This document shows, one piece after another, positions 2,856-50,360 of a stretch of 64,000 nt of DNA. The notes below the pieces were generated by a model. That model worked only from the letters and a program-made list of their open reading frames with translations. It was not told where the DNA came from and ran no database searches. The position numbers and the translations under genes are program-made. The stretch is from Lepidodermella squamata. Its lineage: Eukaryota; Animalia; Gastrotricha. Location: contig JBLDXI010000003.1 of assembly GCA_047495785.1 (NCBI GenBank), positions 2,232,001-2,296,000 on the forward strand, given 5' to 3'. Positions within the stretch are counted from its first letter, which is position 1. The number at the start of each line of letters is the position of its first letter.

Positions 2856-5800
2856 TCATTTCACAGTGGAAGAATATTTTTCGAGATGAAAAATAAACGA
2901 TCGGACCGCTTTCCAGTTTTTCACAATAATAGCCCTGCTCATAGGGTTGAGCTTTTTATTGTCCTTTTTCAAGATGGCGAGTGGGAATTTCGAAGCCAAA
3001 TAGTCAACTATTTCAATCCGCACGTCGTACTCCACAGCCAAAGCCAGCGGAGTTTTCCCATGCGCGTCTTGCAGATTACCGTCTAAGCCGTGATCTTCAA
3101 CCAGGCGTTTCACCATGTCAAAATTTTGCGAAAAAACGGCGTAATGCAAGGTGTTACGTTGACTTTTGTCAACAGCTTTCACGTCACAGCCGTGATCGAT
3201 GAAAAAATCAACGATTTGAGGCCTATCAACCATGACGGCTCGCAGTAACGGCGTTTGGCCATTCGCAGCGGCTTCATCTATCAACTCCGGGCTGATGGTA
3301 ATCAATTCATTCAAAATCGGTAAAAAATCGCCCTTTTCTACGTTGTAAAATTCGGATACCATGTGGAATAAACTGACATTTCGGATGAATTTCGCGGCTG
3401 GGTTGTGGCCTTTTTCAACCAAATATTTGAAGACCTCGAGACAATTGAACCTGACAGCGTCTGCAACAGGGCTGTAAACCGGATTCAAGTCGAAATTTAG
3501 CTCATTGACCAAGAACTTGACAGCTTCCAATGAAGATCGGCACGCTAGATTCAACAAATTGTAGCCGCTGCCGAATTCCACCTTGACAAGTTTCGGAAAT
3601 TTTTCGCATAGATATTTCAGGGTGTCGAGCTGGGACGTGGTAAAAGCCGAGCATAGCACGTTAGGAGCTGAAAAAGATTTAAAAGGAGAATACCGGCCTT
3701 CGCCCGTCACATCGACCTGCATCTCCTCGACTAGAAATTTGGTAGTTTTCAGGCTACCTTCAATGGCAGCTATGCCGACAACCTTGTCAACTTCCTCACC
3801 ATCTTTCAGTAAGTGGTTTGATATGTAATTACTGCATCCAGGCGGCAAACGAGGATCCAAGCAAATCGATTCAACCGTATCGACATCATCCACCAAAACC
3901 GCGTCTCGTAACCGATCAAATTCGTAAGGAAAATCCGAAAAATGAAACATTTTCCGCTATAAAAAGTAAACAAAAATTGAAAGGTTCCAAATATTTGAAC
4001 CACTAAATTTAGAAGTCCTGACACTAAATTGTTCATATTCTTTGAGATTTCGGCGTTTTCGTGAACCCTGTCCTGAACATAGGAACCTGAGAAACTAAAG
4101 CTGAACCTTGAACCTAGAATCCTGAACCTAGAACTGAATCCCTGGGAACCTAAGAAACCAAAGCTGAACCCTGAACCTAGAATCCTGAACCTAGAACTGA
4201 ATCCCTGAACCTAGGATTACTTGAGCTACCTGGCGCCCTAAGCTACGTAGACTACGTAGATAAAATCGATACTTGGAATCGATATTATCGGCTCTCCAGG
4301 CTGAAGTACAATTCGTAAACTGAGCACTCATAGCGCAAAATACGCGCAATATGAACATCTATTGGTTAGGCATGATAACAAAACAATTGAGATTCCAGAG
4401 AAGACATCAAACTCGAAAAAGCATACCTAAAGAAAAACTAGTGCTGGAGCTTCAAACTTAGTGCGCACTTGGCATACCCAAATTGAAATTGAAAATAAAA
4501 TAAAATTTGGAAATGCAAATAAAAATAAAAAACCCGCCTTAAAATTTGAAAATCACCGTAGCGCAGGAAATTTTGGACAGGGCAAAGAGGCCCCTGCCTT
4601 TTTCTCAAAGTTCCTTTGAAAATCAATATTTTCCAAAATTAGACCCAACGAAAAATCAAAACTCAAAATTCAATCCGTATGCAAATAAGCATCTAAAATT
4701 ACCCGATAATTTGCAAAATTTATTCAAAAAACTGTCAATGAGGTAAAAATCGTAAAATAAATCAACATACCTTTGAAATGGGCGAAATCACATTTCTGAA
4801 TTCCGGTTTCGCATCAATGGTTGCAGTTTTCGAAATCAAATCAGCCATGTAGTCCAACAAGAAATTATCAGTCTGGAAAACTAGCTCAGGTCCGAACCAT
4901 GCCTGACATGGATATTCCATCGGGCTAAGCTGAATCAATGAAAATTAAAAAATAAATTAAAAAATGTATAATCATATAAAATCAGAAGGACCTTTTTGTC
5001 TTTGTCGCGAATTTTTGCATAAATTTCTGCGACAGCACTTAAATCCAGGCCAGACAGCTTCGAAATCGGTGTGATATCGATTACTTCATCCGGAAAAGCG
5101 CCAATTATAAGATTCCGTCGTTCGCTTAATTTATCCGTTAAATCTCCCTGTAATTTTTCACGAGCTTTTTCGAATAAATTCTGAAGTGTTTTTGACATCG
5201 ACTCGAAATGAGAATCAATTTCCGCGGCCAATTTCGATCGGAAATACTCCATTTTCAAGTCGCTTTCAGCCAGCTTTTCGTTATAGGAGGACCTTGCAAC
5301 GTTCAGCCGCTCTGAAAACTGCAAAAATGTTCAAAATACGAAAGAAAATTGTGGGAAGATTTTACTGACGTTCAGTGAAATCCAACTCATTTCGAGTTTC
5401 AGGCGCTCAGCGTGGCCAACTGAACAAGCTTGGCAGAAATTCAGCCCGCAATGTGAGCATTTTACGAATTTTTCAGTCAAGAAATTGCCATGTGGGCATT
5501 TTTCGCCCACTAACACGAGTCTATTCCGGGGATCCATCAGGCTTCCAGCTGTTTCGATAATTTGTTGAAGCGATTGATTTTTACGAAATTCTTTTAATAA
5601 AATAAACATTGGATACATACTAATTAAGTCGGTTAAAATTTACGTTCTTTCCCGTCGGAAGTAACCGTGAAATGACTTCTCACTTTACAAACCGGGCAGA
5701 GAAAATGGCTCGTTGATTTAGCATGTTTTTGAGCGCATTTTTCGCAGAAAGAGTGGCCACACGTAGGTAAGATGATTGGCGATTCGAACTTCTTCAAACA

Positions 5801-5968
5801 AAAACTGCATTTGAGTACCTAATTTCTTCTAATAACATTTCAAATCCAAAAATGAAAATCAAAGCTCACGCCAGGCAAAGTACCGTCGATTTCGACTCGG
5901 TTGCCGCATTTCGGAATCTTCGCCGATCGACCATCAATTGAGTCTGAACTCGGGCGCTTTCCCAACAT
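2856..5968 (-). CDS. RING-B-box-like-coiled-coil-ankyrin (TRIM-like) protein, copy A, intact, about 693 aa
   Basis: Exons 5968-5870, 5818-5644, 5590-5370, 5318-4992, 4929-4771, 3956-2856, all GT..AG with phases 0,1,0,0,0 and an open frame. RING CSFC..CGHSFCEKC..CPVC; B-box-like CPH..CSHC..FCQAC..H; helical exon 4; ankyrin motifs (GQTPLLRAV, GKTPLALAV). Confidence 0.88.
3986..4480. mobile_element. Dispersed non-autonomous repeat (family also at 52551-53002, 55230-55490, 40470-40530, 59140-59250)
   Basis: Shared blocks such as CCAAATAT..CCACTAAA, AAAATCGATACTTGGAATCGATAT..GGCTCT..AGG.TGAAGTA and GGTTAGGCATGATA recur at these sites. This copy is in the last intron of copy A. Confidence 0.65.
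4063..4215. repeat. Local tandem repeat, roughly 65-bp units built from (C)CCTGAACCTAGAA subunits
   Basis: AAAGCTGAACC.TGAACCTAGAATCCTGAACCTAGAACTGAATCCCTG occurs twice, plus partial units. Confidence 0.8.
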
Positions 5969-8086: not shown

Positions 8087-8467
8087 ATGAACTTTTCGGT
8101 TTTATGCCTTATTCTATCATTAATTACGATTGCTAACACCTCCCATCCGACCAATGGTACAAAATCAGTCAATCATGCTGAATTTATGGCGCAGTTGAAA
8201 GCTAAATCCTCGCACAAGTTCATAAAAGCGCGAGAATTTCTGGCTCATTGGATGGTGAACAGCTTCGGCAATTCGTCATTACAGGCCTGTGCTCAGTGCT
8301 TTGGTCTTGATCACATCCCTCCGGAGGCGTTCGTGGCTTGGTACACGAAACGGCATTTCTTACTCGGAAGTGCCTACAAGGATATGGTTATGGCCTACAG
8401 CTGTTCGAAGCTGCATATTCTCGAACGATTGGCTTTCTTGAAACAGCGAAAATGCTTCAAATTTTAA
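8087..8467 (+). CDS. Secreted 4-Cys orphan protein, copy 2 (126 aa)
   Basis: Signal-like N-terminus and close paralog of 1522-1890. TATATAA about 50 bp upstream. Upstream and downstream flanks are homologous to those of copy 1. Confidence 0.88.
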   Translation: MNFSVLCLILSLITIANTSHPTNGTKSVNHAEFMAQLKAKSSHKFIKAREFLAHWMVNSFGNSSLQACAQCFGLDHIPPEAFVAWYTKRHFLLGSAYKDMVMAYSCSKLHILERLAFLKQRKCFKF

Positions 8468-8984
8468 CAGAAAACAGAAAACGCATAATTTGCGAAACTT
8501 GACGCATGGTGAAGATTGTTTATAATAATTAGTGTTACATTATTACTTGGATACTCGTTAGCTTTTTGTGGACTTGTCACAGTTCGAAAACTTGAAAACT
8601 TGCAAAACTAGCCAAGTATTATGTATCTTGCAACGAAATAAAAACTTGGCTATTGCAGACAAAATCCTCAATTATGAACTCAAAACAAGTGAGGCAGACG
8701 ATTTCAGTTATATGAACATTTTGAAGACTTCAGCATATTATTACAGCCAAAATGGGCAAAAACACGCAAAATATGGACCTAACCAAAAGGTTCCTGAATT
8801 CTGGTTCGACGTCGATTACGGAAGTTTTTGCTGTCAAATCAGCAATGCAACCTGACAGAAGTTGTTTAGGTTGGAAACCAGCTTTGATTCAAGCGAAACC
8901 CGACATGGATCTTCATTTACTCTTCTAGCCTAAAGAAATTGAATATGACGTATTAAGACGAGCAAAATTATGTTTTTGAACTAG

Positions 8985-9444: not shown

Positions 9445-9486
9445 GCAAATGCGATGCTCAAGTCAGTATAGTCAAAAAAGATGTGA

Positions 9487-9558
9487 AGGGGACACCCGGG
9501 TTTGAACCAGGGACCTCTCGATCTGCAGTCGAATGCTCTACCACTTAGCTATATCCCC
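9487..9558 (-). tRNA. tRNA-Cys(GCA)
   Basis: GGGGATATAGCTAAGTGGTAGAGCATTCGACTGCAGATCGAGAGGTCCCTGGTTCAAACCCGGGTGTCCCCT folds as a cloverleaf with GCA anticodon and A/B boxes. A T6 Pol III terminator follows about 8 nt downstream. Confidence 0.95.
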
Positions 9559-9639
9559 TCTCGCCTCATGTTCACGAGTGAAACCTGCGTAGTTACGCCT
9601 GCGGCGGCCATTTGCACAAGTTGTGACGATTGGTTGACG

Positions 9640-15411: not shown

Positions 15412-15737
15412 GTTTCTTCTTGTCCGATGTTACCGTGACATAGCTCCACACTTTGCAAACCGGGCAGCAAAAGTCATTGGATGATTTGGCCAATTTTTGA
15501 GCTCATTTCTCGCAGAAAGAGTGGCCACATGTAGATAAGGCGATTGGCGATTCGAACTTATTCGAACAAACGCTGCATTTGAGTACCTAGTTCATTCTAA
15601 TAACATTTCAGATCCAGAAAATGAGAACAAAAGCTCACGCCCGGCAATGGACCGTCGATTTCGACTCGGTTGCCGCATTTCGGAGTCTTCGCCGATCGAC
15701 CATCAATTAAGTCTGGACTCTGGCGCTTTCCAAACAT
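15412..15737 (-). pseudogene. TRIM-ANK 5' fragment (exons 1-2, RING), pseudogene
   Basis: Exons 15737-15639 and 15586-15412 have the same lengths as copy A and are very similar. A RING Cys codon is TGA (15503-15505). No downstream exons found. Confidence 0.85.
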
Positions 15738-16035: not shown

Positions 16036-16525
16036 CTACTTGTAATGACTTTCCAGGTGAGAATTGAAGGATCTAAGCACGTTCCATTTTCAAGCACTAA
16101 TGGCCCTGCCAAGAGCGCAGAATTTGTAATAATCGGGCGTGAAGATCGTGGGAGGGAATTTTGACGCCAAGTAGTCTATTATTTCAAACCGCACGTTCTT
16201 TTCCACGGCTAAATTCAACGGAGTCTTCCCATTAATTTCTTGAAGATTGCCATCCAGACCGTATTTTTCAACCAATTTTACGACCATATCCAGATTTTGG
16301 GACATGACAGCGAGATGCAAGGCGTTACATTGCTGTTTGTCGACAGTTTTCACACTGCAACCTTGATTGATGAAAAACTGAAAAATCCGAGGCCGATCGA
16401 CCATAACAGCTCGAAGTAACGGTGTTTGACCATAAAATGCGTTTTTCTTCTTCCGAATCGGGAATAATCGCGTTCAATTTATTCAAAATCGGCGAGAAAT
16501 CACCGTCTTCCTTGTTGCGATACTG
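16036..16525 (-). pseudogene. TRIM-ANK 3' fragment (C-terminal ankyrin repeats), pseudogene
   Basis: Close to 26782-27260 (ALHLAVMSQNLDMVVKLVEKYGLDG.LQEINGKTPLNLAVEK). Frameshift near 16440 and premature TGA at 16090. Confidence 0.85.
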
Positions 16526-17389: not shown

Positions 17390-19252
17390 CTACTTGGGCG
17401 GAATCATGTCACAGTCGAATGATTTAGCAACCAAGTAACCCACATCAGTAGCCTTCCAGTCCATGGCACCGATGAAAATGACTGTCGTGCAGTAGTCAAC
17501 ATCGCTGATGGTCAGAGTTTCAATGGCCTTCGCGTGAAGACCCGTCAGCGTTGCTGAATACGAACTCTTCCACGCTTGAGTTGAATTCGAAACAGGGAAA
17601 ATCTAAAAATGAGTAGTGAGTTGCAAGGAAATTCAAGTCTAATAGAAACCTTACTTGAAGGTAGTTAATGTTGTAGTCGAAGCTATTTCGGCAGCCTACA
17701 ATAGTGTTACCGAATTGATCAATTATCGGTGCATTTGCGAGGAAGCATTGTACTGACGACCGGATGAACTCGTAGCGGCCCGTTAATCCTTGCCTAAACA
17801 GGTGAAGAAAATACCTGTCTGCAAACAGCGCAATTTTTTCATCCCCAGACTGTCCGTAATGGTTGTTGGTGGTCATTGATTCGAACGTTTCGCTGACTTT
17901 TACTCCGGTTGGGTAATTGATCCAGTACTGAAGCGTATCCGGGAAAGACGATCCGTCAATCAGGGAAAACGCAATCGCGTCTCCTGTTGCCGCGTTCGAA
18001 CACCACAGATAGTTCAACTCAGGATCTGCATGGAGGTCGGTGCACCACGCACGACTTGACACCGATTTGACAAATACCTCAAGGGATACATTACCAGCGC
18101 CCTGTCCCGACAGCAAAGGTTCCAAGTCAGCATAATAAATGGTCTGTGTAGAATACGACACAAAAAGTCTGCCGGTTGCATCGTCGTAAGTACAGCTTAA
18201 GATCGCGGACTTGGGATCAAGGCCTGGAGGAACGGTTTTGACCGTCCACATTGGGGTCCGCTCCATCATGTCGATGAGCCAATCGCCGTAAATGCTTCTG
18301 GTAGACTTTTTCGGTGGTTCGGGCAGTTTGAATGCTTGCAATTCGTTATAAGAATTTACAGTGAGAATAATTTTGCTCTTAATCTCGTCACGAGAAATGG
18401 TCTGAGTTTTGTGAGTTGTACCACGAGGCTGCAGACGATTTTTCGGCTTGCGAAGGGTGGCTACGTAAACACCTTTATACCTAGCAGATCTGTGGGTGTA
18501 GATCGTTTGAAACTCCGTATTTCCGTTCGTTGGTCGATTCCAGTACTGAAGGGAATGGGTGACACGGATTCTTAAGATTTCCTTCAATAGCTTACCCCAT
18601 CTTTTTGCAGGCTTTCAACAGGCTTCGAGCCCGATCCCGAATCCGATTCGCCTTCCTTCAGCCTGCAGTAAGTGTTAGAAACTTGCCAAGTACCATCGGC
18701 TTGGCATAAAATGTTTGATCCGACAAGTTCATAGCCTTCCTTGCATTCAACCACTTGATGGCTACCGACAAATGGCGGGCAATCGCTATGGGGCAAATAG
18801 CCATTGTCGATGACAGGTAAAGGACCTGAGCAAATAGGAACGCAGCTCCCGGCAGATGTCCATTTCTGGTCTTTGCCACAATGGATTGTAGCAGAACCGT
18901 TGATGGCATAGCCCGGTTTGCAGGTGACAACCAGCTCACTGCCTATTGTTGTTGTTGTCACCGAAATCTGGCCATTTTCGACTTGGCCAGGGTGGCCGCA
19001 GCTCTTTTCACAGGTAACAAGCCCTGGCGGATACCAAGTACCGCCAGCTAAGCATTTCTGGACTGTAACGCCGCAGGCGTCAGAAACGGTGAAGCCATCG
19101 TCGCAAAGCAGGCCCAATCCAGTCCCAATTGGCGCAACGTCACCTACAGAAGATCCTGTAAGAAAAACGATGGCATTTTCCCGTTTCGGAATAACACAGG
19201 TCCCGTAGATAAAATCTATCGAGCACGCTACAACCACTATACTCAGAAACAT
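17390..19252 (-). CDS. Secreted protein with 3 Sushi/CCP domains and a beta-propeller-like C-terminal region (about 586 aa)
   Basis: Exons 19252-18596, 18545-17655, 17602-17390 (all phase 0; donors GTAAGC and GTAAGG). Signal peptide, CCP patterns (CGHPGQVENG..TCKPGYAING..C..W..C), and blade-like motifs (TYDDATGRLFVS, DLHADPELNYLWCS, PIIDQFGNTIVG). Confidence 0.82.
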
Positions 19253-25238: not shown

Positions 25239-25330
25239 TTAAAATCAACGGCACGATTCCTAGAAATATTTTTCATTTGCATAATGTTCCCTTCTTGCAG
25301 CGGTTGTGTTTCATTTAAAATTGATTGATA

Positions 25331-26509: not shown

Positions 26510-26781
26510 TACTTGAGTTGATAAACATCGAAAAATCCTCCTTAATACAAATTTCAAACAATAATCAGTGACACCTATAAATGGGATTTGAGAAAACAGT
26601 AGATATTGAGCATTTGATCGCCATTTTCATTTGAAACGCAGCAGCCTGAAGCTCACAAGCAGTAAAACAGGTAAGAAATCATTTCAAAAATCGGAATCAG
26701 CCAGGTTACGAAACCGACATGCAAATATATACAAATCATGAACAAACGCGATGAGCTATAAAATGAAGTTTTAAAAATGCG

Positions 26782-34100: not shown

Positions 34101-37100
34101 AGAGCAATTCGGCTCCGGTCACGCCATCACGTTTTGCGACTTCTCTGTGCCGCTACGCAACCCCTGGAACGCACCTCCCTCTGGCAACCTTCCCCGCCCG
34201 CAGCCCTTACGTTTCGATTTTTCCCGGCCGATTGGCCGACGTATGAACGTGAATGCGACTCCCGTCTGCCCGCCGTTGTTGGCCCCAAGGGTGGCCGACC
34301 CGATCGCAAAGCTGCCCGTCTTGCCCGCCTTGCCGAAAAAGAGCGCAATCCGGAAATCGAATTGCCCGAAATCGACCTGTCGGAGCTGCCCGAAATCGAC
34401 GAGCCCACTCTATGATATCGAGTAAATTATTCCAAGTAGGTACAACTTTCGGGCGCCGTGTGTCGCTGATGGACAGAAACTATTATATATGCCGTCGATG
34501 ATCGCCGCGACCGCTTTATGGCCGAACTTCGCAACTTACGCCAGAACGCTGGCAAAAATCACTTCTTGTTTGACAAGGAACGCGACAAGAGGATCGAGGA
34601 CATCCGAGCCGCAAAGAAATTAAATTTACTTGAGCGGCGGCGTGAAAATCACTATCGCATCTACACCGTTGATAGCGTCGACCGTCTCGTCGATCGCAAG
34701 ATTTATGAAAAAGACGGTTCGATTGCCTTCTATTGCTTCTCTTATCCGCCGCGACAGCAAGAGCTAGTGAGCGGAATACGAAAAGTTGTTCGGTGTTGTT
34801 GCTATGACCTATAATATCCACATTTTTTCTCACATTTCTGAGTGCATCTCACAATTTTTCGGTTCTTTTGAAAGTTTCATCAGCGTTATGAATCGGTAAG
34901 TTTAACAAAAAATTGATCAATTTTGGAGTTTAATGAGAATTATAATTCGTTTTAATCTAAATTCAATGAATTCCTATTCTCAGACTCTTTATAATTCTCG
35001 CGCAGCTGGAATAGAGGTTGTCACCACGCGGCGTAGTTTTATGCGACATTTTTCTCGGTAGTTTACTCTCTCATTTATTGCCTCCTTTAAAAGTCTCGCG
35101 TTAGATTTGGATCTATCCGCCGTCGCATGGTGTTGACGTACGAGGAAATGTGCGACGTTTGCGGCGACTTATCTTCTCTTAACCGTAATTTCTTAGTAAG
35201 CGAATATCCGTTTTTTCTCCGTTGGTACCGCACGTGAGTTTTTAACTGATATGTAAATTCTATAGTTGAACAATTCACGAAATTAGGAGCGAGTCTAAAT
35301 CAATTGGGGCCATTCGCATCCGCTTTCGTTACCGCCAAATTTGAGATAGTCAACCTTGAATGCCTCTTGAGTGACACTCCCAATCGAAATCTCTCTTTTG
35401 AACTAATTAGTTATTCAAACATATGAATTCTCAAACAATCCGCCTTTTGATTTAGATTTTTTTATCTAAATTATGGCAAAGCTAAAAGTTTTTTGCGGCT
35501 CCGTCGCAAAAATTATTTTATTTCCGCGGCCGAACTTGATCCGCTTGTTTCTCTTCGCGAAAAAATCGGCGCCAGTTTTCGCCTCACCAGCGATTTTTCA
35601 CTATCGTACCGGGACGGCGATGACGACTTTCTCCTCACAGAGGAGTCTGAGCTGGTCGACGCCATCAACGGCCCGGCGGAACTGCGGATAACTGTTGGCC
35701 CGCCCGTCCCGGCAGCAATCGACATGACGATAATGGACTTCAACTCGACCAGGACCTGCAAATCCCCAGTCAAGTCGGTGTTGAAGTCGCCAAGTCAACT
35801 GACTATAATGCTATCAGGCGGCCTCTGACATGAGTCAACTTGCACAATGTCGTCTCCATCGACAGCTTGTCCCATCCCAAACCCAACGCAATAGAGGCTA
35901 TTGGGTCCGTTCGTACTTGATTCACTTGCTACTTCAAGTTCATCAACTTCATATGCGGCTGCAGCAGGAGGACAAGCGGATCATAACATGATAAACGTGA
36001 TGCGAGGTTACTCACCCAACAACAATGACCAGCGGTCAATCAAGGTCAATGGCTCGTCTGAATCTGGCACTGAACCAGAGACGGGCGAAGCCATAGTTTT
36101 GCCTGATGTAATCCCGATGAACTATCAATACCTCGTGGATGCCAAACAAAAGTTTGAGGAATTGGTAGGAATGGTCTATTTCAATCAATCGGCCGTATCT
36201 ATTTTGAAGATGAGCAATTCGGCTTTGTCTATCACATCGTATCTCTCAGCCGACCATGGCACAGTCATTACGGAGAAACTACGTATTCGCCGATTAAACG
36301 CTTGTACGAACACAACAACAGTATGATGTGCATGTAAGCCATATCTCTCTTCATTATCCGTCTTTTAATTAGATGCCGGGGCAAATATGACACAAGGCGA
36401 TCAGTGGTTTCTCTACGCAGTCGTCTCCCAGCTGTCAAGTCGCCGAGAGCGGATGTATCTTAAGGCAGAGATGCATCGAATACTTGACCGGTATCCCGGA
36501 ATTTTGTCATGGCGATTGCGAGCGCAACTATTCAACGTCGGGGCCAACTGGCAAATTTAATAATGTTGACTGCCTTGTGGCACTACATTTCTGACGTGAA
36601 CCGTTTGCATTCACGTTGTCGCGCTGGCTCATGAACTCGTATCGCATCTAATCCCTAACGAACTTCAGTCTCTTACTCCGGTATTGCGCGGCATTCCTCG
36701 CCCTGGCCCCGCACTAGCTTCGGCCGAACCGAGTACGGCAAACAGTGGTCAAGTAATTGAAATTGAAGCCGCACAAATTAATCCAGGATATGGCTATTCA
36801 ATGGAACTAAACGCTGAATATGTTAGAGCGTCTTCTCGAGCAGAAAGTAGCATTGATTCTCTATGGTGCTCGGCACGATAAATTTCCGAAATTTAGCAAC
36901 TACAAGAGGTCGACATCAATCGACCAATTCTCACGAGCTTACGATCGAAATTTCGGCGAAAGAAGCCTTCATCCCTATTTTCAACATTGCCCAAGGTATC
37001 TACGAACTCAAACCGCTGCTAAAGCTGACACTATTAGAAGGGCTTAATCCGTGCCAAACACAAATCTTCAAGATACTACAAATGAGATTAAAAAATGACA

Positions 37101-38546
37101 AAAATGTAGAAATTAGCTGCTCAGTTCCATCTTTTGCCAATTTGGCGAAATTTTATAGTTAGGGTAAGGTTACCTGAATCTGAATAAAAGTTTTCCACTT
37201 CTTTCAAACGCTTGCCACTCTAAGCTCATATTTTGACCATAAACAGTCAGAAAACATTCCAGTAAGCTCACAAAATCTCATGAGCCAATTCCTCACCGTA
37301 CCGTCAGGTAACCGTACCAACTCAAAATTTGAAATAAAATATCATTTACCGAGTGGTGAATGCGATGCTCCACATTCTGCTTGTCTCTCGACGTGATGTA
37401 GGCGGTTTTTTCAATCAGCCTCTCGATATGATCAATCAAGCGTTCGTCACCTTCGAATTTCAATTCCAGCATAGCATTCTTTTGAGGCTCTTCAAAACGC
37501 TGAAGCTAGAGAAATAAGGAAAATAAATACTGGAAATCCATGATTATGGCAGATTTACCTTTAGGTCAAATGATTTGACTTGATCGTAGATAACCTTAGC
37601 CTTGCTCAAATCTTCAAAACAAGTGGGATTCAAATTTATCGTCTTCATTTGATCAGCAATTTGGCGAATCGGCGCGACTTCATCGACTTTCACGTTTTCT
37701 TCAACCAATTTACGCCGATGTTCCATGCGATCGCGAAGATTTTCCTTCATTTTCGACCGCCCACTTTCGATTGCAACTCGAAGTTTTTCGAGCAGAGAGT
37801 CGAAATGTGAATCGATGTCAGCGCTCAGTTTCATTTCCTCTTGAGCCAAAGTTTCAAAAGCGACCGCAGATTTTTCGGCGATTTTTCGAGATGCATCTTC
37901 TGAAGTAAATTAGAAAAACTTAGGAAAAAAATAAGAAAAAAATAAAAAAAAATACATTCAATGAAATCCAGCTGCATTCCAGTCGAATTCGATCGGCATG
38001 AGCTTTCGAGCACGGTTCGCAAAATTCCTTACGGCAGTGGGTGCAGGCGATCATTTGAGGAAATGAATCATCCTCATGAGGGCACCTTTCACCCGGAACG
38101 AAATACGTCTTTTTCATCAGGGCTTGAAAAGCTTTGACCATGTTCTTCAAATGCTGGTTCTTTTCATAACCTAATTTGGATAATATTTTGATGATTTGAC
38201 AAATTTGCTCAAATAACTTAACCTACCGCAATCAGCCTTATTAGTCATCTGATTTTGTCGATGACAATGAGGGCAGTGAATGTAGGACATTTCGGCCTTT
38301 TCCAGCAACGGCAGAATGCAATTGTAGCAAATTGTGTGGCCGCATTCGTGTAACAACATCGGCTTGAACATCACATCCATGCATACCGGGCACTCAAAAT
38401 TCTGGAAAAATAAAGTTTTAATCTCGCAAATTAGGTCGGTACTTCAAATAATCCACCTTAAAGAATGAAAGATCGACAGGAGCACCATCAGCCGGCTCAG
38501 ACTTGCCAGGTTTCAATGTCAGCTTCCCTCCAGTCGAAGCCAACAT
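31175..38546 (-). CDS. TRIM-like RBCC-ankyrin protein, copy D (divergent; possible nonsense codon in exon 4)
   Basis: Exons 38546-38457, 38401-38227, 38170-37956, 37918-37559, 37505-37350, 32266-31175. RING CPVC..CGHTICYNC..CPHC. The only phase-compatible exon-4 acceptor I found gives TAA at 37910-37912. Confidence 0.7.
33350..34250 (+). mobile_element. Non-LTR retrotransposon fragment: apurinic-like (EEP) endonuclease of ORF2
   Basis: LRVLQWNAEG..PDVILLNESHL..GGVVILV..GYNP..GDLNA..NGRIL..PT..LDV..SGH (degenerate SDH). GC-rich; truncated before the RT. Confidence 0.85.
34497..34750 (+). mobile_element. N-terminal fragment resembling KRBA2/SCAND3-like integrase transposase
   Basis: DRFMAELRNLRQNAGKNHFLFDKERDKRIEDIRAAKK..HYRIYTVDSVDRLV resembles the N-terminal helical region of these proteins. 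No catalytic core is seen. Confidence 0.4.
35473..37100 (+). pseudogene. Degenerate ORF beginning with a PB1-like domain (probable TE-borne gene)
   Basis: MAKLKVFCGSVAK/(frameshift)YFIS..LREKIGASFRL..FSLSYRDGDDDFLLTEESELVDAI matches the PB1 basic Lys plus acidic OPCA pattern. Downstream frames are broken by stops. Confidence 0.5.
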
Positions 38547-39150
38547 TTCAACTGATTAATAAATTACCTAAATTATCAATTAGGATCTGGATGAAATTCG
38601 TTAGTCCTATTCGATTTCTACATTCCAATCGGGTTCCAATCGATTTTATCGAATATTTCATGAATTATTTGAAATTACCGTGAAATTATGAGTGAATTAT
38701 TGCATAAATCGGTAAGATTTTTTCCGAGGGTTTATTATTAAAGAGACCATGGAAGTCGCGTGGCAGGAATGATAAAAAATTATTTAAAAAACTTCTAAAA
38801 TCAGAGGTCCGAAAATACAATTAAACAAAAGAAACTCAACAATTTATTGAATAAATTCTTCCAATTAAATTTTTCAAATCGAAACGTCACCCTTAATGTT
38901 TTTGAAGTAAAGCATTATTTCAGCCTCAGCTTCGCGATACTCTTTGATAGCCAGCGTAACAGGTGATTCTCCATCGTCATTCATCCCATTTAAAAGGTCC
39001 GGAAAATTGACGCATAAATACTCGACAACGTCCACATTTGCCGCAAAATGCATGACGTTATTCCCATCTTTGCCCAAACAACACGGGTCAGCTTTACACT
39101 GCTCGATCAAAAATTTAACAATGTCCAAATTGCCGTGAGAAGCACCGACG

Positions 39151-39420
39151 GGGCTCCATCCAGATGCCCGAACGCATTTGACCGAAGTCATATGCCCGAA
39201 AGCAGGTGGACGAATGCCATTTGCCCGAAAGACGCTCAGCCGAATACGATGTAGCCGATTTCAATGCCAGTCAGCCGATCGGCAGGTGGCCGATTGCCAT
39301 TTGCCCGAATGCTAAATTGCCCGAATGTAATTTATCCGATGAATAAATGACAGAATGACACTTGGCCGAATCGTGATTTTCGAAATTTTTAATAATTGCC
39401 CGACTGTCATTTGCCCGAAA
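39151..39420. mobile_element. Transposon end with CATTTGCCCGAA-like subterminal tandem repeats
   Basis: Repeats (ATTTGCCCGAA, ATATGCCCGAA) of about 15-bp period start right at the break in the ankyrin frame. Confidence 0.7.
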
Positions 39421-39443
39421 AAGATTGGAAAATCACTTGCCAA

Positions 39444-39628
39444 TCGACATTTTACCTTTAAGGCAGTCCACACCTGAAACTAAGGTGAAATTGAACGACC
39501 TTTTGAAGCCAAAATCATAAATCAGGTGTGAAAATGATTGCCTCGGCCTGATGAGTAACTTGGCTTCAAAAGGTCGTTCAATTTCACCTTAGTTTCAGGT
39601 GTGGACTGCCTTAAAGGTAAAATGTCGA
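39444..39628. repeat. Perfect 69-bp inverted repeat with 47-bp spacer
   Basis: 39444-39512 is the exact reverse complement of 39560-39628 and contains TTAA|GGCAGTCCACACC. Confidence 0.9.
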
Positions 39629-42399
39629 AAGTGGACGTTGACTTCTCGGTCGCCTATCGACCACTTCTAATAATGCTAACCGGGCAAATTTAGTGTCAAA
39701 ATATCGGCCGTCTCTCAGTATAGCGATGACCCAAAGCCCGACGCTGTAACCAATAATCGAAGCGCTGGCGCCAGCGATTTACGTGATCGATCGATTTGTA
39801 ATTAGTTCAGTTTCTTACTCCAGGACAATGAGTTAATCCCCTGCCATATATGGCCCCCATGGCGTTCCATATTTTTGATGGCGAGTGAGCACTCTATCAG
39901 CTCTATGGCGGCGATTGAAAAAACCAAAATTTAACTGTTTACGCACTCAATTATGTGACGCAACAATGGCTGATGAACCAAAACTGAAAAGTTGAAATAT
40001 ATTTTTTTACTTTTTCATGATGTTCATTCAAGCTATTGCTTTTAAATTTGAAAATTCACCTGAAATCAAGTTACTAATTATGCAAAATGATACAAAGAGG
40101 TACAAAGAGGATTACTAAATTCTAAATTCAGTGATTCTCTAGCCGCGATTTTCCCGCCGCTTTTGCCTCTTTCTTTGCGGTCAGCAGAGGTCCGCATGTT
40201 TATCACTAGCATATCGCGCGCGTTTTGACTTCAAAAGTATTTGAATCTTAAAATCGCTATTAGACCTTACCTATTTCATAGTTCATAGTTCATATTTTAT
40301 CATTTCATAATTCTAAAGCTTTTTTGGTCATTTTCACGCGTCCGCTTGAACAAACATTCTACATTTTTGACGAGCGGCGATTCGGCCGGAAAGGTTCCCA
40401 CCCGGCTGCAATTTTTGAGAGTTTACGAAAATAGGTTGAGGACCTATGTTCGAATTAGGGGACTGTTATCGGTCCAAATATTTGCACCACTAAATATGAG
40501 GCTTCAGCACTAATTTTGAGCGTCCTGGAACTACATTTCATGTCAAATGTCAATGTCAAAATGTCAAATTGTTCATGAATTTTTTCAAATTTTAATTTTT
40601 TTTATCCATGCTATGTGATTTTTTTATTCCCTCGTTAATCGTAGTCAAATCGGCGCCTTTTCCGACGAATAGCTTCACCATTTCTAAATCACCATTCCCA
40701 CAAGCATCTTGAAGGGGCGTCTGTTCAACGCAGTTTTTCACCTCCAGATAATCAGGAATTGTTCGGTGAAGCAAATTCAAAATTTCAGACGAATTCTTTC
40801 TATCTGGGCATTTTACAATAAGGTGGAACAAATTATCTCTTCCGCGAGTTTTGACGCTGCAATCAGCTCCTTTTCCGATGAGATATTCCACAATTTCGAG
40901 TTTTCCCAATTTCACAGCCGCCATAATCGCAGTCCGGTCTTTTTTATTGACAGCATTCACGTTGAGATTCAAATTTTCAACCAGATATTTGACCATGTCG
41001 AAATTACTTCTGCAGGCCTCGTTGAGAATACCGCTGTCTTCAGCTGCCATAAATTCGCTCAATTCCTTCGAAATTTCGAGTAAATACTTCGTAATTTCGA
41101 TCTGCCCGCCTCGGACAGCAGCAATAAGTGGGTTCGTACAAATTTCGTAGCAGTCACCCAGCCAGCTGTAGTAAGGCCGCATTTCCGCGCCCATTTCAGT
41201 CGTGAGAAATTTCAAAATTTCCAGTTTTCCGTGAAAAGCTGCGGAACAAATCGCGGTCTGCTGCTCGGCGAGATTTCGGTGATTAGCCATGTAATTTCCG
41301 CAGTTTGGCGGTAATTTCGAGTCGAGGCAGATATTTTTCACAAAATCCAAATCACCTTGGGAAATAGCTTGGTAGAAGCTCTCAATTTCAGCAGGCCGTA
41401 AAGCGCTATCATGTAACTATTGAAAATCCATGATAAAATAAATAACGCAATATCAAGTGGAAAATACCATTTTCAATTCGATCGAAGGGCCAGAGTGGCA
41501 TTTCGGCGGATGGGTTTTAATGCAAGCAGCTTGGCCTATTAGCCGTGTAATTCGATTGAGAACGCCAGAATCCGTTTTGAATTCGATCTTTGGTTTGAAA
41601 GCGGAGGAATTCGGATTTTCCATATTTTTCAGCTAAAATAAAAAAAATTGAATAAAAATTCCAATCAAAACTCCCACTGGTTTTGTCAAATAATCAAATT
41701 GTTGGAAATTTTCAAATTAAACAAAAATTCGTTCGAATCCAAAACCGAAATCTTGGCGATCTATTTAATGCATTGTTCCTTCATAATTTAGGCCTAATTT
41801 CGCAATGGCTATAAATCCACCATCAATTCTACCATCAATTTTGGGACTTTACAGATTGGCTAAGCGTGTATTCCTCCCAAGTTGCGTGATTTCGCAAACA
41901 GTCGACCGTGTCCTCCAGCTGGAATTGCTAACATCGTGCAAAAGTCCTCCCGAATGGGCCCTTCAGCTGCTCTCAAAACAGTACAAGCACGTCGGCTCAG
42001 TCCGATTCAGTTTTGCGTCAATGGTCTCGAGGAATTGTCTTATATAGAATCTGATTTAGAAAATAACAAAAATTTCAGAATTGCCAATTTGTCAAATTGA
42101 TAACGACCAGAGCAATGTTTCAACGAAATGCGCGTTTTTTTCTGAAGTAAGAGCAAACTGTTGTGGAAGGAGCTCAAATCCGGCAGAGTTCCGGCAGAGA
42201 AAGTGCTCCCCGGACAGCCGTTCACATGATTACTGTGAATAGGCCCAAAGCAGGCAGAATGTGGCCGCCGCGATCTCACCATCGTCTTCCGCCCAGGGTA
42301 GCTCATTATGAAATTCGCCGATGTACGGCGACAATTTCAATTCCTCTATATATACGTCGGCCCCCAGCCCAACCACGCCGAAAATCAGCAATATAATTA

Positions 42400-42900
42400 C
42401 AACCAGCAACAGTGGTGTATTCGCGAGGACTACAGCAAACTCTATGGTACACTTTCACAACCTTCGGAAAATTTGATCTTGGGGGAAGTCAAGAGTTCGC
42501 GGCGCGCTGTGCCGGTCTTAAACTTAACTGACGGTGCGAAGGCAACTACGGATCGAGAGAAAGCTCAGGCACTTGCTGATAGCTGGGCTCCTACCTTTCA
42601 GTTCGCAACGCGTAACTCGCCGCATTCGAGCGATCTTATTTTTTGGGAATCGATCGATAAAGCTTGCGATGCCGATGCGGAGCTAAAACCGGTACAGTTT
42701 TTACCACACACCCTAGCGGTAAGCCTCGGCCTTCCCGCAGCCGTTTTTTGCTGGGTGTCTGATTTCTTGCGCAGTTCTCGGGTTAAGGTCAGTGATACCT
42801 TTAGTGATTCGTTTGAATACGCTTGTGGCGTTCCGCAAGGTAGCCCTTTGTCTCCTATTCTATTTATCATCTTTACCGCTGCTCGTGCTTTATTTTTCAA
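42400..42900 (+). mobile_element. Non-LTR retrotransposon reverse-transcriptase remnant with internal deletions
   Basis: ATTDREKAQALAD..F and WVSDFL..RVKVSDTFS..GVPQGSPLSPILFIIF. Confidence 0.85.
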
Positions 42901-44644
42901 ATTTCGCGAGTTGTTCCCAGTATTATGTAACAACAAAAGATCAAGAGCTAGAAACCTACAACCTGCATCTTCTTGGCGCCCCAGCTAATAGCTGTGCTTT
43001 TTCGGTGGCCTAGATTAATCTAGCGCGTTCCCGTGCGAAGTTCCCGTCCGTTCATCGGATGGCTGAAACGTCAACTTCCAGGTCCCCCATATACCGCATC
43101 TTTTGGAGCGATATACCGTACTGTATCTCCATGTATCCTCAATCTTCAGTTATTTTAATTGAACACTTTCCAGCCAGTGTTTTACATTTCCGTATTCCGT
43201 ATAGGTAGAAATACCACGATGTCGATCAACTTTCAGATCAACGGTTGCGACGAGAGCACTGCAGCGCGAAAATTTCAAGCGGCTAGTAGCTGGTCATGAT
43301 GTAGATAGCCACGTGACTGTCGATATTTATTCCGTAATTCACGAATGCGCACCACAAACCGAGGATACGCGCCGCCTACTAGGCCGGCTGTTTCATGGAA
43401 AAAAGGACAAGGGTAAAAAAACAAGGTCGTCTTGAAACGAGGCGATAAGGTGCAAATCAGCGATGCGATAAGAGACCCCCGCTCTTCGCCGAGTTTGTCG
43501 TATAAACTGTTTCCCTTTTCTGCGCTTTTCTGTTTGCCACTACGAAAATACCTTCTCTACCTTCTACCTTCTCACGATCAGAAACTGGGACAAAGGAACC
43601 CGAGTTGCCTCGTCGATTTCGGGACTTGGGTCAACTTTGTCCGACTGATTTTTGAAGCTCTGTAGGAAAGATAAGAAAGACGCTTAAAAATCCAACATCG
43701 ACGACGCAAGCGGAGGACTACAATTGCTTTAGCGTAGGAGGGCGAAAATAGTAGAAAGGTCTGGCGGAGATCAGTGGTCTTACTGGCCGCTATTGCAGCT
43801 GGTTCGGTATCCTCAAATGATAACAGCCTCGCTTAATAGCTCAAAAAATTCACATAAGTACCAGGCCCAAGGTTAATAATTATGTGCGTCGAATAAAACC
43901 CGCTCGGATAATTGCCCACTTTTCATAATTTTTTTGACCTCGGAAAAACAATAATAGCCATCGATATTATTCGATACTTTCTCCACTAACGGCAAGTTAC
44001 GGCAAGCTGCATTTAATATGAAAAATCGAGAAAATCATTTTCGAAGATTTTCAGATTCAAAATTCAAATCACAGCTTCGAAATAAATAAAATTGTAGAAG
44101 TCAACTTGAAACCGCAGTGAATTTGAAAAATATGGGTTCAAATCACGTACCTTTTGTTCGAAATTCCATACATCCGAATAGAGTTGATCTGCCGTGGAGA
44201 GCGCATTGGATCCGGAACAATAATTGGGTTGATCATAAGCCTTCAACTGTTCGATGATCGAATTTAGTCGAGTTTCTTCAGCTCTGAAGCTATCTTCAAC
44301 CAGTTGCTTTCGCGCATCGATGATATCGGTATGTTTTTTCAACATTTTGCTTCGATTTTTCTCGATTTCAAACTTAATTGAGGCCAGAAGGTCATCATAA
44401 AACGAGTTGACCTTGCCGGTTAGTTCTTCTTTGAGACAATCAAGTTGTTTCCGGGTGTTGGAAACTTCGATATCGGACCTTTTCTGACAAACTTCAACGC
44501 GTTGGGAAAACTGTTGAAAATAATTAAGAACAAATTAAAATAAACAGAAAGATTGGAAATTCTGGAAAATTATAAATTAAAAGAGACGTGTTTGGGCATT
44601 AATTTGTTCAAAATTTGCCAAATTGGAATTTTGAATTATTTTCA

Positions 44645-44760
44645 GGTGGTTCGACTTTTGGCGCCGTTTGAAAAGTGGACGAAAATTCTTCAGATGGAGT
44701 CTTCAACTTTATCGGACGTTATTCCAATGGTCGCCTCTATCAATTCATCCTTGAAATGAA
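44645..44760 (+). mobile_element. hAT transposase fragment
   Basis: VVRLLAPFEKWTKILQMESSTLSDVIPMV matches the hAT L.PF...T..L....T.S.VIP motif. Confidence 0.65.
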
Positions 44761-44939
44761 CACGGTGTTTTTTGAAATTTTCAAAATTTCGAGGTTGATA
44801 TTTTAGTAGCCCGGGCTGCTATAGGAACAAATACGGAATAGGTCTTCAAAACCGAAAAACCCCCAAATACCCAAATATCGAAATACCAAATATTTGTTAT
44901 TTGCCCACCTCTGTAATTCTGCTACCCACCTCTGCTAGG

Positions 44940-45230
44940 GGAGGAGACCATTGTTTCTGTCGAAGATGCATACGACGAAACTTTTATAAAGCGATACGAG
45001 ATCGCCGCATCAAAGATCATTGAGTCCGTGCATCCGTCGCTGCTCAATCTAATACGAGCGCCTGGTATCCGCGGTGACACGCTAAGGAATCTATTCGCTG
45101 CTACGGCTAAGGTTACTATTCGTACGCAACTCTTCACGTCAAGAATCAACCAGCTCGAAATCGGGAAACATGTGAAAGATTTTACCAGTCTGGTCGATCA
45201 ACGCGCAAATGCCGGCGAAGTCCTTTGCAC
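44940..45230 (+). mobile_element. Ty1/Copia gag-like fragment
   Basis: AASKIIESVHPSLLNLI..LRNLFA..RTQL..HVKDFTSLVDQ..AGE resembles the Copia gag (UBN2-like) region. Confidence 0.5.
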
Positions 45231-46499
45231 CCGCTTCTCTTCATCTTTTACTGTGCTGGCATGCAACCTGTGAGAGTCAACCCCGACGATCGCCGAAAAC
45301 TCGTGGTACTTACGCCTACGACGCAGCAAACTTTACGAACAATGTGTCTCGCGGCTTCAATCGTATTGAAGTCGATTCAACCTCGATAAACCTCGATGGG
45401 CTCCAAATCGGGGGGAATTTTATTCATTCATGGCTAGCCATAGAGTATTCCCTTATTCCGCTCATGCCGAGAGCAACGCCGTGGCATTCATTACGTCTGG
45501 TGAAATTTTATTCCCAGTAAATTTATTAAATAATTGATATTTTTGCGGGTGTGATCGAAAGAAAATTCGCCCAAATTTTTATTAAATTTATAAAATTTTT
45601 GAGAAAACCTGAAAAGTATTGCTTTTGCGTGGCAAGTGAAAATATTGCGAAATGCAGGAGATGTAGCAACTTTCAACATAGGGAAACTTTGTCAATTCCA
45701 ATTTCATTCTCATTTTTGAGAAATGAAAGCGAGACTTTCAGTTCCTTAACGAAACTTGAATTTTTCTTCAAAATTCAAGTTATACACTTATTATAACTCC
45801 TCAGAGTCGAATCGTCCGATCGGCATCTACTGCCGCAGAAGACGAAATCAGGACCTGTTTCTGAAGAAAAACTTCCCTTTTTTACGAATTAGAATTTCAA
45901 TAAAGTTGAATGATGCGATGACGTTGAATGAATTAAGAGAGAAAGACGAAAATAAAACACGAACATTTCGGGTCAATTTCAGACCCAAAACGAAACGAAA
46001 ACGATTTTTTTAGGACGCCTAGTGCGAAAATTCGTTTCATCCCTTATATTATTTCCCGTTGTTCTCTGGCGATCGGTTCGCGATGGGAAAACACGATGAC
46101 GATGACGATGGCCATGAGAATTACACAGACAACGACATCTTCGCTTTGGTGCGCGTTTTGAAGCAGTATCCAGCTCGTAGAAACACCGCGTTTTACCCGC
46201 TTCGCCGTGAAAAGAACAACGCCAATCCCAGCGTCATTTCAGTCTACCATCGTTTGAAATTTGTTGGAAATAATCGTTTGAAATTAACGCGTTCAGTCTA
46301 CCATCGCAGAGATCTACCATACGTTAAAAAAAAACTGGCGATGGACTTCTCCCAAGTACACTAGGACCATCCAACTCTCAGGTCTGAGTGGAACGAGGAC
46401 CGCATCTGCGCGTCCTTAGACTAGCTGATTCGTGATTCAGTCTCGCTTTACTGAAGCAGAATGCTGGAAGCAAATGGAAGCCGGTCAAATCGGTTGACA

Positions 46500-46700
46500 T
46501 TTCTGTCCGCATCAACCTACGACGCCGTTGCTTTTGTCACTGATGTATGGTCAGACGCGAATTTGCAGAGGTCCTATGACATTTTTCTTTCTCGAAATAA
46601 CCGGCGACACTTGGTCGCTGAATCACGCGCAGTACATGTGTGCTCATTTTCCCGAAAAGAAGACCGCTGAAAACCTCGAGTCGAAACGTTAACGACCTCC
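46500..46700 (+). mobile_element. hAT transposase fragment (first catalytic Asp region)
   Basis: VAFVTDVWSD..RSY followed, after a frameshift, by TAENLES. Confidence 0.55.
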
Positions 46701-47412
46701 AGAGACAGGTCATCGACAATGTGCGAATTGCGTCGCCTGGAGGATGGATCCGCAGTTTTTGATACCATCAATTAAAACTGGATTCAGTCGATCCGGTCAG
46801 TTGGCCAAGTTGATTCCAGACCGCACTCATTAGGATCCGAATTTCCAACGAATGCATTTTTGGTTCGTAAACTCAAAGGTCATTCGCGATGATGATAACA
46901 AAGTTCGACTCCGCTTGAGGTGGGCAACTCACGTATTCTGTGCCTGATGTGTGCTTCATAATATTGCAACATCCCGAAGTCAGCGTGTTAATGATGAGGC
47001 TCGCATCGTTTTCCCCCTCATCTAAAGCGCTTGAGGGTATAGCGTAGCAGGCTTTGCTCGTCGGCGTCAACTAGTCGCGTTTTTTTAATGAAATTTTGAC
47101 GAAACTCATTGAATTGATTGAACTCAAGCTCGGCTTCTTCATCTCAAATTTAGCGCGGTTAAAACGAGACAGATATAGTAGAAATTCTAACAGTCTAAAC
47201 AGAAATTCTCGATTTGTTCAGCCTTGTTGCGTGATCGACTTTGTTCAAAAATCTATTTAAAAAAAGTTCGCCAAAAATAGTTGAATTTTGCCATATTTTG
47301 TCGTTATCAGCCAAATTTTTTTTACATTCGAAAAAATTGTCTTAAATGAGGTCAAACATGAAATTTAAATAAATTTATAAATTGGACGTCGATTTGGTTC
47401 AAAAATTATATA

Positions 47413-48181
47413 CCGTAACGAGTGGTAACTTTGGAAAAAACGTTTTTTCGAACATTAAAAATCAGCCTTTGCTCCTAAATTTCAGGAATTTTTACCAAAG
47501 GTGGGGACGGTGATTCTTGAATTTACTGCAAATTCTAGAAATTTTTAGAATTTTACCTGACCTTTGGCTAATTAATATGTGTTCCGGTAACTTTGGACAA
47601 TTAGAGGGTAGTTTTGGACACTCATTTGCATATGCAATTTCATTGCAATTTCATTGTGAATTATCTATTATTCATGGTTTTTTATTTAATCTTGGGTCAG
47701 ATTTCGGAAAAAATTATGAACAGATGGCGCATCATCTGTTTCTCGGAAGTCCAATAAAAATACGTTTCTGCGCAGCAGCATACTTAACCCGTCCAAAAGT
47801 GTCCAAAATTACCCCAATTTTCACCTGTTTTTCAGGTAAATATCCTGCTAAAACGCGTCGACGGATTGTCATTTTTTCTTCGATTATAGGGAGAGTAAAT
47901 ATAGGAGAATGCTCATGCCAATTTTTATTGAAAACTGTTCGATTTTTAGAAAGATAGAAGGGGGGTCCCAAAACGGCACCCAAAGTCTAACTGCTTGCAA
48001 CTTTTTCTGAAATCCGATTTCAGCTCCAATCGTCTTGATTTTTATTTCAAACGAAAGCTGAGGAGACGGAGAATTTTATGCAAAAACCCCCATGATTTAA
48101 ACGTTCAAGCCTGAAAAGCTAAACACCCGCAAAGCCGAAAGTTTCCAAAGTTACCGTGTCCACATTCATCACACGTTACGG
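47413..48181. mobile_element. Tc1/mariner(pogo)-type MITE related to 25331-26509 and 62700-63230
   Basis: TA|CCGTAACG ... CGTTACGG|TA, with shared internal blocks (TTTGGACAC..CTCATTTGCATATGC, AAAGCCGAAAGTTTCCAAAGTT). Confidence 0.8.
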
Positions 48182-50360
48182 TAATCTTAAAAAAGATTTT
48201 CACCGAAAAACGGTAAAAATTTCAATTTTTTCAGCTAAATTATTCAATTTCGGCTTTTAATAAAACATTTACTTCGATCACATGGCTCTAAAAGTTATTT
48301 TCATTGAAATATTAGCGAAAAATGACAAACATTTCTAGCAATCCAGCAGCTTTCGAGGCGAAGTCGCTCAGCATGTGCCAAACAGCAAGACTGGCAGAAA
48401 AATTCGTTGCAATGCGAGCATTTGTGACTGTCTTTGCTAAAAGCCGGGCCATGAGGACATTTTTCGCCGATCATGACAGGCCGCTGCTCATTTTCGACCA
48501 CAGCCCTTGAAGCGGTAACAATTTTCTGGAGCGCCGCATTATTTCTAAGCCCTAGATTTTCAAACAGATTAATCGGAAATATTAAATTAATTGTTATTGT
48601 TACATTTTTTCTCGCGAATCAGGAGGTGAGGTTCCACCACTACGGGTTTGCTTTCCTTCTGGCAGACAGGGCATTCGAAGACGGTCGCTCCGGTATATGG
48701 CAATCTCGCATTTTCTGAACAAATCAGGCAGATTGAGTGGCCGCATTTTGATAGGAAAAACGGCTGGCGGTTGCTGCTTTTCGGGAATTCAATCGAAAAA
48801 GCCTCGCCGTAAAAAGGGTTCGAACAACCAGGACAAGTTAAACCCTATGATAAAGAAATAGCCATAAATTCGACGAAAATGTTTGATTTTGAAGAAAAAA
48901 GCACAAGCTCACCTCTATCAGATGTCCGTCATTAACATTCAAACTGCTTCTAGGCCGTTTTATTTTAACGCAAGGCAAGATGTTTTCGGGTGAAACTTTA
49001 TTTTTCATTCAATTTTTCATTTATCGTGAAACGCAGGGAGAAAATGAGCTTATAGAGAAGAAAACACACTGCCTCTATTTCACTGCGCTTTATTGCAAGA
49101 AATCGCTAAGCAATAAAACAGGCAATAAAACGACTGCGCATGTTGCTTGCACGTGCTACGTTTTATGAATGGCCAAGGCGAAAAATAGGTCAAACATCAT
49201 CAAACGTGCGTATTCCGGCGTGCTAAATAAAGAGCCGAAAGGCCGAAAATCAGGATAATAGCTTAAACCGATGGCTGCCTACAATTCTGGAAGTAAGAAC
49301 GATTCAACTCTGAAAGATTTCAACTGAAATGCAACTATAATTGAAAAATAAAATCACTATAATGAGCTCCAAAATCACGCGAATGCCTCATCATTACGCA
49401 ATCGTTCTGACCAAAATGGCATTCTGTAACACACAGTGTGACATAACACAAGATGACGAAAATGCAAATGCCACGCTTCCAATTATCAAGAAAAAGCTTC
49501 AAATTCGATTGAATTTCGAGAAATTTGAAGTTTGAAATTTTCGAAATTGAGGGATGTTTTCTATTATTCTACCCGTAATTTCGGGAAGCTCTGGCTTAAG
49601 CAGCGGATGAAAGATCCCATGTAAACGCTAGAGGCTTTCGGGTTATCAAGTCTACACCATAGCTCAACATTTTTCATTTCAAAGTGAGCTTCAGTAGTGG
49701 GCGAACCGAAAATTCGGGGAGAAAAGTTAAGGCCGAATAGTCAGCGATAGCTTCATTTTTACCCCAAAAAAACACTGAATTACCGTCAGCAAGGTATCTC
49801 TGATTTACCGTCAGCATTAGGGATTGAAGTGGTATTCTTGATGGATAAACACATTCAAAAGTTGCAATGAGCTGCATCGGCCAGCTAACTGAAACGCATT
49901 CAAGTTGTCCTTGAAGTTTAGCCTTGAAGTTACAGACCTTATTGATAAAATGTTAGATCTCCTCTCTGCATTACGCTTAAACCAATGAAATTCTCTTCAA
50001 CGTCTTTAAGAACAGGAAAACGTCACACAGAATTCCATGAAATTTCCATGACTTTTCAAATCCTTTGTCTTGAAAATGTGGAAAAAGTGTCATTGATGCA
50101 TTTTTTCAGGCGACAATCCCTTATCGAGTCAAAACTGAGTCGGGTTTCGCGAGTTGAACAGCTTTCATAATATAATTGGGGTCTTCTTGTTTTCACCGCA
50201 ACGCGAATTGAAGTCGAATTCGCCTCGGAACTAGTAAGATTCGTAAAATTCCTGATTTTCTTAATCTTTATTTTTCAATGAAACTACAAATATTGGAATG
50301 GTTCATAAGAGAATTGGTAGAAAATGTCAATAAAAACACATGGGCTCTGCCCAAGATACT

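Follow-up and report, generated by a model that had tools for sequence, protein, structure and literature searches.

A tandem family of predicted TRIM-like RING ligases with ankyrin repeats in the gastrotrich Lepidodermella squamata

Introduction

TRIM ligases are classed by the domain that they carry at the C-terminus. Here we describe a tandem array of genes in the gastrotrich Lepidodermella squamata, the predicted products of which combine a RING finger, a B-box-like zinc motif and a long helix with a tail of ankyrin repeats, an order recalling the RING, the B-box and then the coiled coil (RBCC) of TRIM proteins. The array lies in a stretch of 64,000 nucleotides (contig JBLDXI010000003.1 of assembly GCA_047495785.1, positions 2,232,001 to 2,296,000), hereafter the window, to which all coordinates refer. 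A previous interpretation made from the letters of this stretch, the sequence-only reading, had proposed a lineage-specific and diversifying family of TRIM-like ligases at this locus. We discuss the structure of the genes, the domains of their products, their relatives in other animals and the turnover of the copies, and from these the probable function of the family.

Organisation of the array

The array, as rebuilt in gene models from sequence, consists of five minus-strand copies (A, C, D, E and F), each divided into six exons that lie at homologous positions in the same order: a short first exon, exons for the RING, the zinc motif, the helix and a linker, and finally a long ankyrin exon. 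Every one of the 25 introns is of the GT-AG type, and 19 of them measure 48-68 nucleotides (nt). Only copies A and D are intact, with frames open from start to stop. Copy A (2856-5968; 693 amino acids, aa) has exons at 5968-5870, 5818-5644 (RING), 5590-5370 (zinc motif), 5318-4992 (helix), 4929-4771 (linker) and 3956-2856 (ankyrins), supported by the open frame, the intron phases 0,1,0,0,0 and Pfam matches. Copy D (26782-30708; 702 aa), also supported by its open frame and Pfam, has exons at 30708-30607, 30551-30371, 30318-30092, 30037-29711, 29662-29504 and 27894-26782. The same phases are found in A, D and F. The sequence-only reading had described five six-exon copies with identical phases; the exon sites are indeed homologous and the phases of A, D and F agree, but splicing at these sites leaves the frame of C and E broken. 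The exon 5-6 junctions that it gave for the intact copies (4771/3956 and 29504/27894) are correct in the rebuilt models.

RING finger

The RING-HC finger of exon 2 exceeds the Pfam cut-off in A and D. That of D (30371-30551, minus strand; E 7e-11) is of the TRIM type, with lysine at the linchpin position, and all eight RING ligands are kept in all five copies. Among solved structures the best match by sequence is TRIM2, followed by TRIM39, TRIM25, TRIM31 and TRIM21. A structure model of the RING and zinc motif of a homologue likewise has TRIM2 as its best fold match in the PDB, the RING with its flanking helix being closest to TRIM2, TRIM21 and TRIM25. In the Atlas this model matches RING+B-box clusters (TM 0.68 over 134 residues), and its neighbours there include a cluster named nhl-1 (TM 0.49, RING part). 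The linchpin residues of A, C, D, E and F are K, R, K, H and Q, respectively; by a published criterion (PMC11992055) this residue should be lysine or arginine, and glutamine is found here in the inactive TRIM6 and TRIM22. The full set of RING ligands and the basic linchpin of A, C and D speak for a predicted E3 ubiquitin ligase activity of the family.

B-box-like zinc motif and helix

Exon 3 encodes a zinc motif (30092-30318 in D, minus strand) of the pattern C-x-H, C-x-H-C, F-C-x2-C, H, which hardly varies among 24 sequences from three animals. None of these 24 family members reaches the Pfam cut-off for a B-box. When the motif is aligned to a B-box that Pfam does recognise, seven of the eight ligands fall in register (hhalign 76%, E 2e-5), and the last B-box histidine is replaced by leucine; the B-box control was a conserved RING-B-box-helix gene from plankton metagenomes (L012-L028), with TAA and TAG read through as in ciliates. 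The closest Atlas clusters to the motif are B-box clusters at 0.86-0.87, which we treat as a lead only. In the structure model of exon 3, the C-terminal finger and the helix are confident, and a fold search with the model of the zinc motif gave nothing above Z 4, the weak matches being UBZ, FYVE and IBR fingers. The B-box of the sequence-only reading is best called B-box-like: it is a variant in register with a true B-box, and Pfam fails to recognise it.

These results bear on whether the family has any kinship with TRIM proteins, since the front half might be a generic RING joined to an unrelated zinc finger, with a superficial resemblance to RBCC proteins. The failure of all 24 members to reach the B-box cut-off and the direction of the weak fold matches would suit such an origin. 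Against this, the motif aligns with a true B-box at each ligand but the last, its position and the helix that follows agree, the RING and its flanking helix lie nearest to TRIM2, TRIM21 and TRIM25, and the Atlas neighbours are B-box clusters, so far as that lead goes. We regard an origin outside the TRIM proteins as very improbable. The family appears to work like TRIM proteins, and whether it belongs to them in the strict sense depends on how the variant B-box is judged.

Exon 4 encodes a long helix-like stretch of ~75 residues that is nearly free of proline and conserved across animals, and which begins as a helix in both structure models. A coiled coil is suggested here by the position of this stretch, and in a simple heptad test exon 4 scored no better than shuffled sequences.

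Ankyrin repeats

Above the Pfam cut-off, exon 6 matches ankyrin families only, and holds about ten repeats (ten in D, counted by eye). None of the known TRIM C-terminal domains (SPRY, NHL, filamin, COS/FN3, PHD-bromo, MATH, ARF and transmembrane) was found in exon 6 with Pfam, and a search for homologues of the ankyrin exon returned generic ankyrin proteins only. The repeats differ in how far they have diverged between the window paralogues, with 37-39% identity in repeats 2-3 and 65-71% in repeats 7-9. Presumed binding-face positions, set by eye, are 36% identical as compared with 62% for scaffold positions. The divergence of repeats 2-3 and of the binding face fits different targets for each copy.

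Relatives in other animals

Relatives were sought with an exon-3 profile among 1.84 billion proteins, and the loci described below were recovered from one Logan run and a metagenome set of ENA. The profile gave 14 weak matches, 12 of which carry the zinc motif, mostly behind a RING. The architecture of RING, zinc motif, helix and ankyrins is present in at least two other animals. Locus L001 holds seven RING-zinc motif and helix-ankyrin units on the same strand within 15 kb, and L007 three further units. A single open reading frame (ORF) encodes both helix and ankyrins at L001 and at L008, which settles the fusion at the protein level, independently of the splice model for the window. Scans of JGI metagenomes with the window profile found nothing, and those with a homologue retrieved RINGs of no relation and ciliate genes of the RING-B-box type, and nothing else.

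Two intron positions are common to these genes and the window, namely a phase-0 intron after the zinc motif, shared with L008, and a phase-1 intron after the RING, shared with L006. On nine of the 11 genes from the other array or L008, a profile of the first ankyrin unit in the window scores 10-33 bits, as against no more than 1 bit on ankyrin proteins used as controls. This difference favours a single origin of the fusion. In a tree of the RING and zinc motif, one group is formed by the five window copies (91/94) and another by ten genes of the other animal (97/90), and most other forks are weak. As the two arrays form separate groups, they appear to have grown separately. The description of the architecture as lineage-specific has accordingly to be given up, and holds for the expansions alone, which look lineage-specific in the same tree.

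Two further loci differ from the arrays. L006 (1830-4114, plus strand) has the front of RING, zinc motif and helix, followed by a C-terminus of ~320 aa that is not ankyrin and has no match in Pfam or the PDB; because the front half carries a different C-terminus here, the tail would seem to be swappable in this family. L011 (5477-7434, plus strand) is a single, non-tandem gene for a RING, zinc motif, helix and canonical ankyrin repeats. It lies immediately downstream of a TRIM-NHL gene that resembles brat/mei-P26 and sits among housekeeping genes, and its first ankyrin unit has no match to the first-unit profile of the window. This single gene is a candidate for a conserved founder. The neighbouring NHL gene was considered as evidence of ancestry and rejected, as it proved to be an ordinary TRIM, brat/mei-P26-like and with B-boxes of the canonical type.

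Selection

Among A, C and D, synonymous divergence (dS) is saturated, and replacement divergence (dN) is 0.34-0.37 in the ankyrin exon as against 0.30-0.46 in the front half. Taken over the whole ankyrin exon, the comparison of these three copies gave no excess that would indicate positive selection, the paralogues being too distant for models of individual sites. Alleles of the L001 array differ by 18 synonymous changes in about 1160 sites and by 19 replacement changes in about 4250, a replacement-to-silent ratio of ~0.3. Judged from their dN and dS, A, C and D are under purifying selection. The family had been called diversifying; if this is taken to mean positive selection acting on the ankyrins, it is not borne out, the ankyrin exon having the same dN as those of the front half, and dS being far larger.

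These values are relevant to the possibility that the copies are intracellular immune receptors like TRIM5 or the fish finTRIMs, with pathogens or transposons as the opponents in an arms race fought through the ankyrin surface. Such a role would be in keeping with the tandem arrays, the many broken copies and the separate expansions in two animals, and tandem TRIM expansions have been linked to defence (Marin 2012, PMC3503706). An arms race on the ankyrin surface sits less well with an ankyrin exon whose divergence does not exceed that of the front half, and with the low replacement-to-silent ratio of the L001 alleles. We consider receptors of this kind possible, although somewhat less probable than their absence.

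Damaged copies and turnover

Damage is found in copies C, E and F, as judged from frame checks. Copy C (22647-25238, minus strand) has exons at 25238-25143, 25089-24921, 24868-24649, 24591-24265, 24212-24051 and 23750-22647, and its homologous frame shifts by one base inside exon 3 near 24820. A contig from a public sequencing run covers C exons 1-5 with 15 base differences and five indels relative to the window, two of which are in-frame insertions that restore residues present in the paralogues, and none of which lies in exon 3. This run contains 87% of D's words and may be the source of the assembly itself, and its contigs merge alleles and show presence rather than absence. A homopolymer error of the assembly was considered for C and is not borne out, as the public contig keeps the frame change; with no indel in exon 3 of that contig, the frameshift is not a simple consensus error. 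A second, intact allele of C is possible.

Copy E (31175-38546, minus strand) has exons at 38546-38457, 38401-38227, 38170-37956, about 37899-37559, 37505-37350 and 32266-31175. A frame change or stop near 37885, at the start of exon 4, can be rescued only through weak, non-homologous splice sites. Copy F (38874-49008, minus strand) has exons at 49008-48913, 48844-48604, 48551-48331, 44510-44151, 41632-41468 and 41416 onward, the last being split by an insertion of ~1.47 kb (about 39159-40627) beyond which the last ankyrin repeats lie at 38874-39158. Because of this interruption copy F ends at 635 aa, and a check of splice sites in its exon 6 found no strong in-frame splice that would mend it.

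Where the sequence-only reading had two fragments, three relics are present between the genes, all on the minus strand. A piece of the linker exon 5 (approximately 8787-8914) was recognised through blastn and tblastn matches to exon 5 of D; a recent copy of exons 1-2 of A (15413-15735, 84% DNA identity) has a stop in the RING; and a 3' end of an ankyrin exon close to D (16036-16513) has a frame break and a stop. On this evidence from the sequence, the turnover of the family is one of birth and death, with rapid gain and loss of copies.

Several mobile elements or possible parts of them lie in and between the copies. The insertion in the ankyrin exon of F holds a perfect 69-nt inverted repeat at 39444-39628, and F intron 4 contains a reverse-transcriptase remnant of a non-LTR (long terminal repeat) retrotransposon at 42308-42988 (plus strand). 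Intron 5 of E, 5.1 kb in length, contains a remnant of a LINE (long interspersed nuclear element) endonuclease, from a non-LTR retrotransposon, at 33433-34425 (plus strand), and an ORF at 35493-35828 (plus strand) with a weak PB1 match below the cut-off, possibly part of a mobile element. Between C and D lies an element of 1.2 kb (25329-26511), bounded by terminal inverted repeats of 27 nt, which appears to be polymorphic because it is absent from the public contig.

Such a record of decay could also mean that the array reflects mostly drift, a conserved single-copy ligase of everyday cellular function, such as protein turnover in muscle or development, having given rise to redundant tandem copies that are now in decay. 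The three damaged copies, the three relics and the many transposon insertions would be expected from this, as would the duplication of an unrelated secreted-protein family within the same stretch; the single non-tandem gene with canonical ankyrins among housekeeping genes at L011 would also be in keeping with it. However, A, C and D are old, their dS being saturated, and have long kept their frames open under purifying selection, and the expansion occurred separately in two lineages. Drift as the main explanation is in our view unlikely.

Relationship to known ligases

BARD1, Mind bomb, XB3/XBAT and KEG also unite a RING and ankyrins in one chain, and lack the front of RING, B-box and long helix; in Mind bomb and XB3 the RING is at the C-terminus. 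Compared with BARD1, XB3 and Mind bomb, the window family has a different domain order, and its RING falls below the cut-offs of PF14835 and PF24921. Among TRIM proteins, the family resembles subfamily C, or class VII (TRIM2, TRIM3, TRIM32, Abba/Thin and NHL-1; PMC3503706), in its RING, which is nearest to that of TRIM2, and in its B-box-like motif, long helix and linker; it differs in having ~10 ankyrin repeats, no NHL or filamin domain, and a single B-box with seven ligands. Like the fish finTRIM expansions and the TRIM-SPRY restriction factors of class IV, it has tandem arrays of RBCC-type genes with birth-and-death turnover and a variable C-terminal module for binding, whereas it has no SPRY, and the dN/dS comparison gave no sign of positive selection. 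The design is also that of the degraders in which the RBCC of TRIM21 is joined to a swappable binder, designed ankyrin repeat proteins (DARPins) among them (TRIMbody-Away; PMC10694607, PMC11870016); those are synthetic, and the window family would be a natural version.

In keeping with the proposal that ankyrin stands outside the standard TRIM classes, the word does not occur in the survey of these classes by Marin (2012; PMC3503706). No description of an RBCC-ankyrin family was found in the literature searched, most subscription journals lying outside that search, and to this extent the architecture may still be called undescribed.

Proposed function

We think it likely that the array encodes a family of substrate-recognising TRIM-type RING E3 ubiquitin ligases, in which ankyrins take the place of NHL or SPRY. 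The earlier proposal of a TRIM-like E3 with an ankyrin C-terminal module agrees with this, and is supported by the Pfam matches of RING and ankyrins, the matches to TRIM2 and the B-box alignment. Several observations weigh on the other side. Splicing in all window copies is predicted from sequence, and three of the five copies are damaged. The linchpin of F is glutamine, as in the inactive TRIM6 and TRIM22, the eighth B-box ligand is missing, the fold search with the zinc motif stayed below Z 4, and the heptad test did not rise above shuffled sequences; furthermore, a lower identity on the surface is normal for any ankyrin paralogues.

Known TRIM proteins are antiparallel coiled-coil dimers, and clustering of their RINGs on the target is needed for activity (PMC11870016, PMC11992055). 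By analogy, the long helix of the window proteins would form an antiparallel dimer, and two ankyrin arms would bind a protein target at the location of NHL or PRY-SPRY. Clustering on the target would then assemble the RINGs, and ubiquitin would pass from the E2 enzyme. Each paralogue probably recognises different targets, since it is in repeats 2-3 and at the binding-face positions that the copies differ most. The targets would most likely depend on the environment, microbial or damaged proteins being about as probable as ordinary cell proteins, and targets that vary with the environment would explain the separate expansions in two animals. Immunity is a plausible role; for this, as for the action against transposons that the sequence-only reading also considered, the birth-and-death pattern is the one line of evidence. 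A fuller proposal is that of an undescribed TRIM class in which ankyrin repeats are the recognition module. Such a class would have originated a single time in an ancestor shared by several small invertebrates, and at least two of these would have separately enlarged it to a large repertoire of intracellular sensors, binding foreign proteins and marking them for destruction. We put this forward tentatively and with some doubt.

An ankyrin family in several species, with repeated tandem expansions, would add a class to the TRIM proteins, and would be a candidate for intracellular defence in animals of unstudied immunity. If the copies merely turn over ordinary cell proteins, the family would represent a new domain combination of modest interest.

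Neighbouring genes

Interleaved with the ligase genes are four intronless copies of a gene for a 126-aa protein (1510-1890, 8087-8467, 20166-20546 and 21844-22227, plus strand). These proteins have a signal-peptide-like start, four conserved cysteines and a conserved C-terminal half, in which they are 50-71% identical, and have no Pfam match. A tRNA-Cys gene is located at 9485-9559 (minus strand). In a gene at 17520-19270 (minus strand), a signal-like start is followed by three Sushi repeats and then by a region with no Pfam match, the frame shifting near 18585. Beyond the array, 50361-52224 (minus strand) holds two zinc-finger-like ORFs with many cysteine and histidine pairs and no Pfam match, and 54000-64000 (minus strand) is occupied by one or more large extracellular genes with DOMON, PAN, VWA, F5/8 and Sushi-like pieces.

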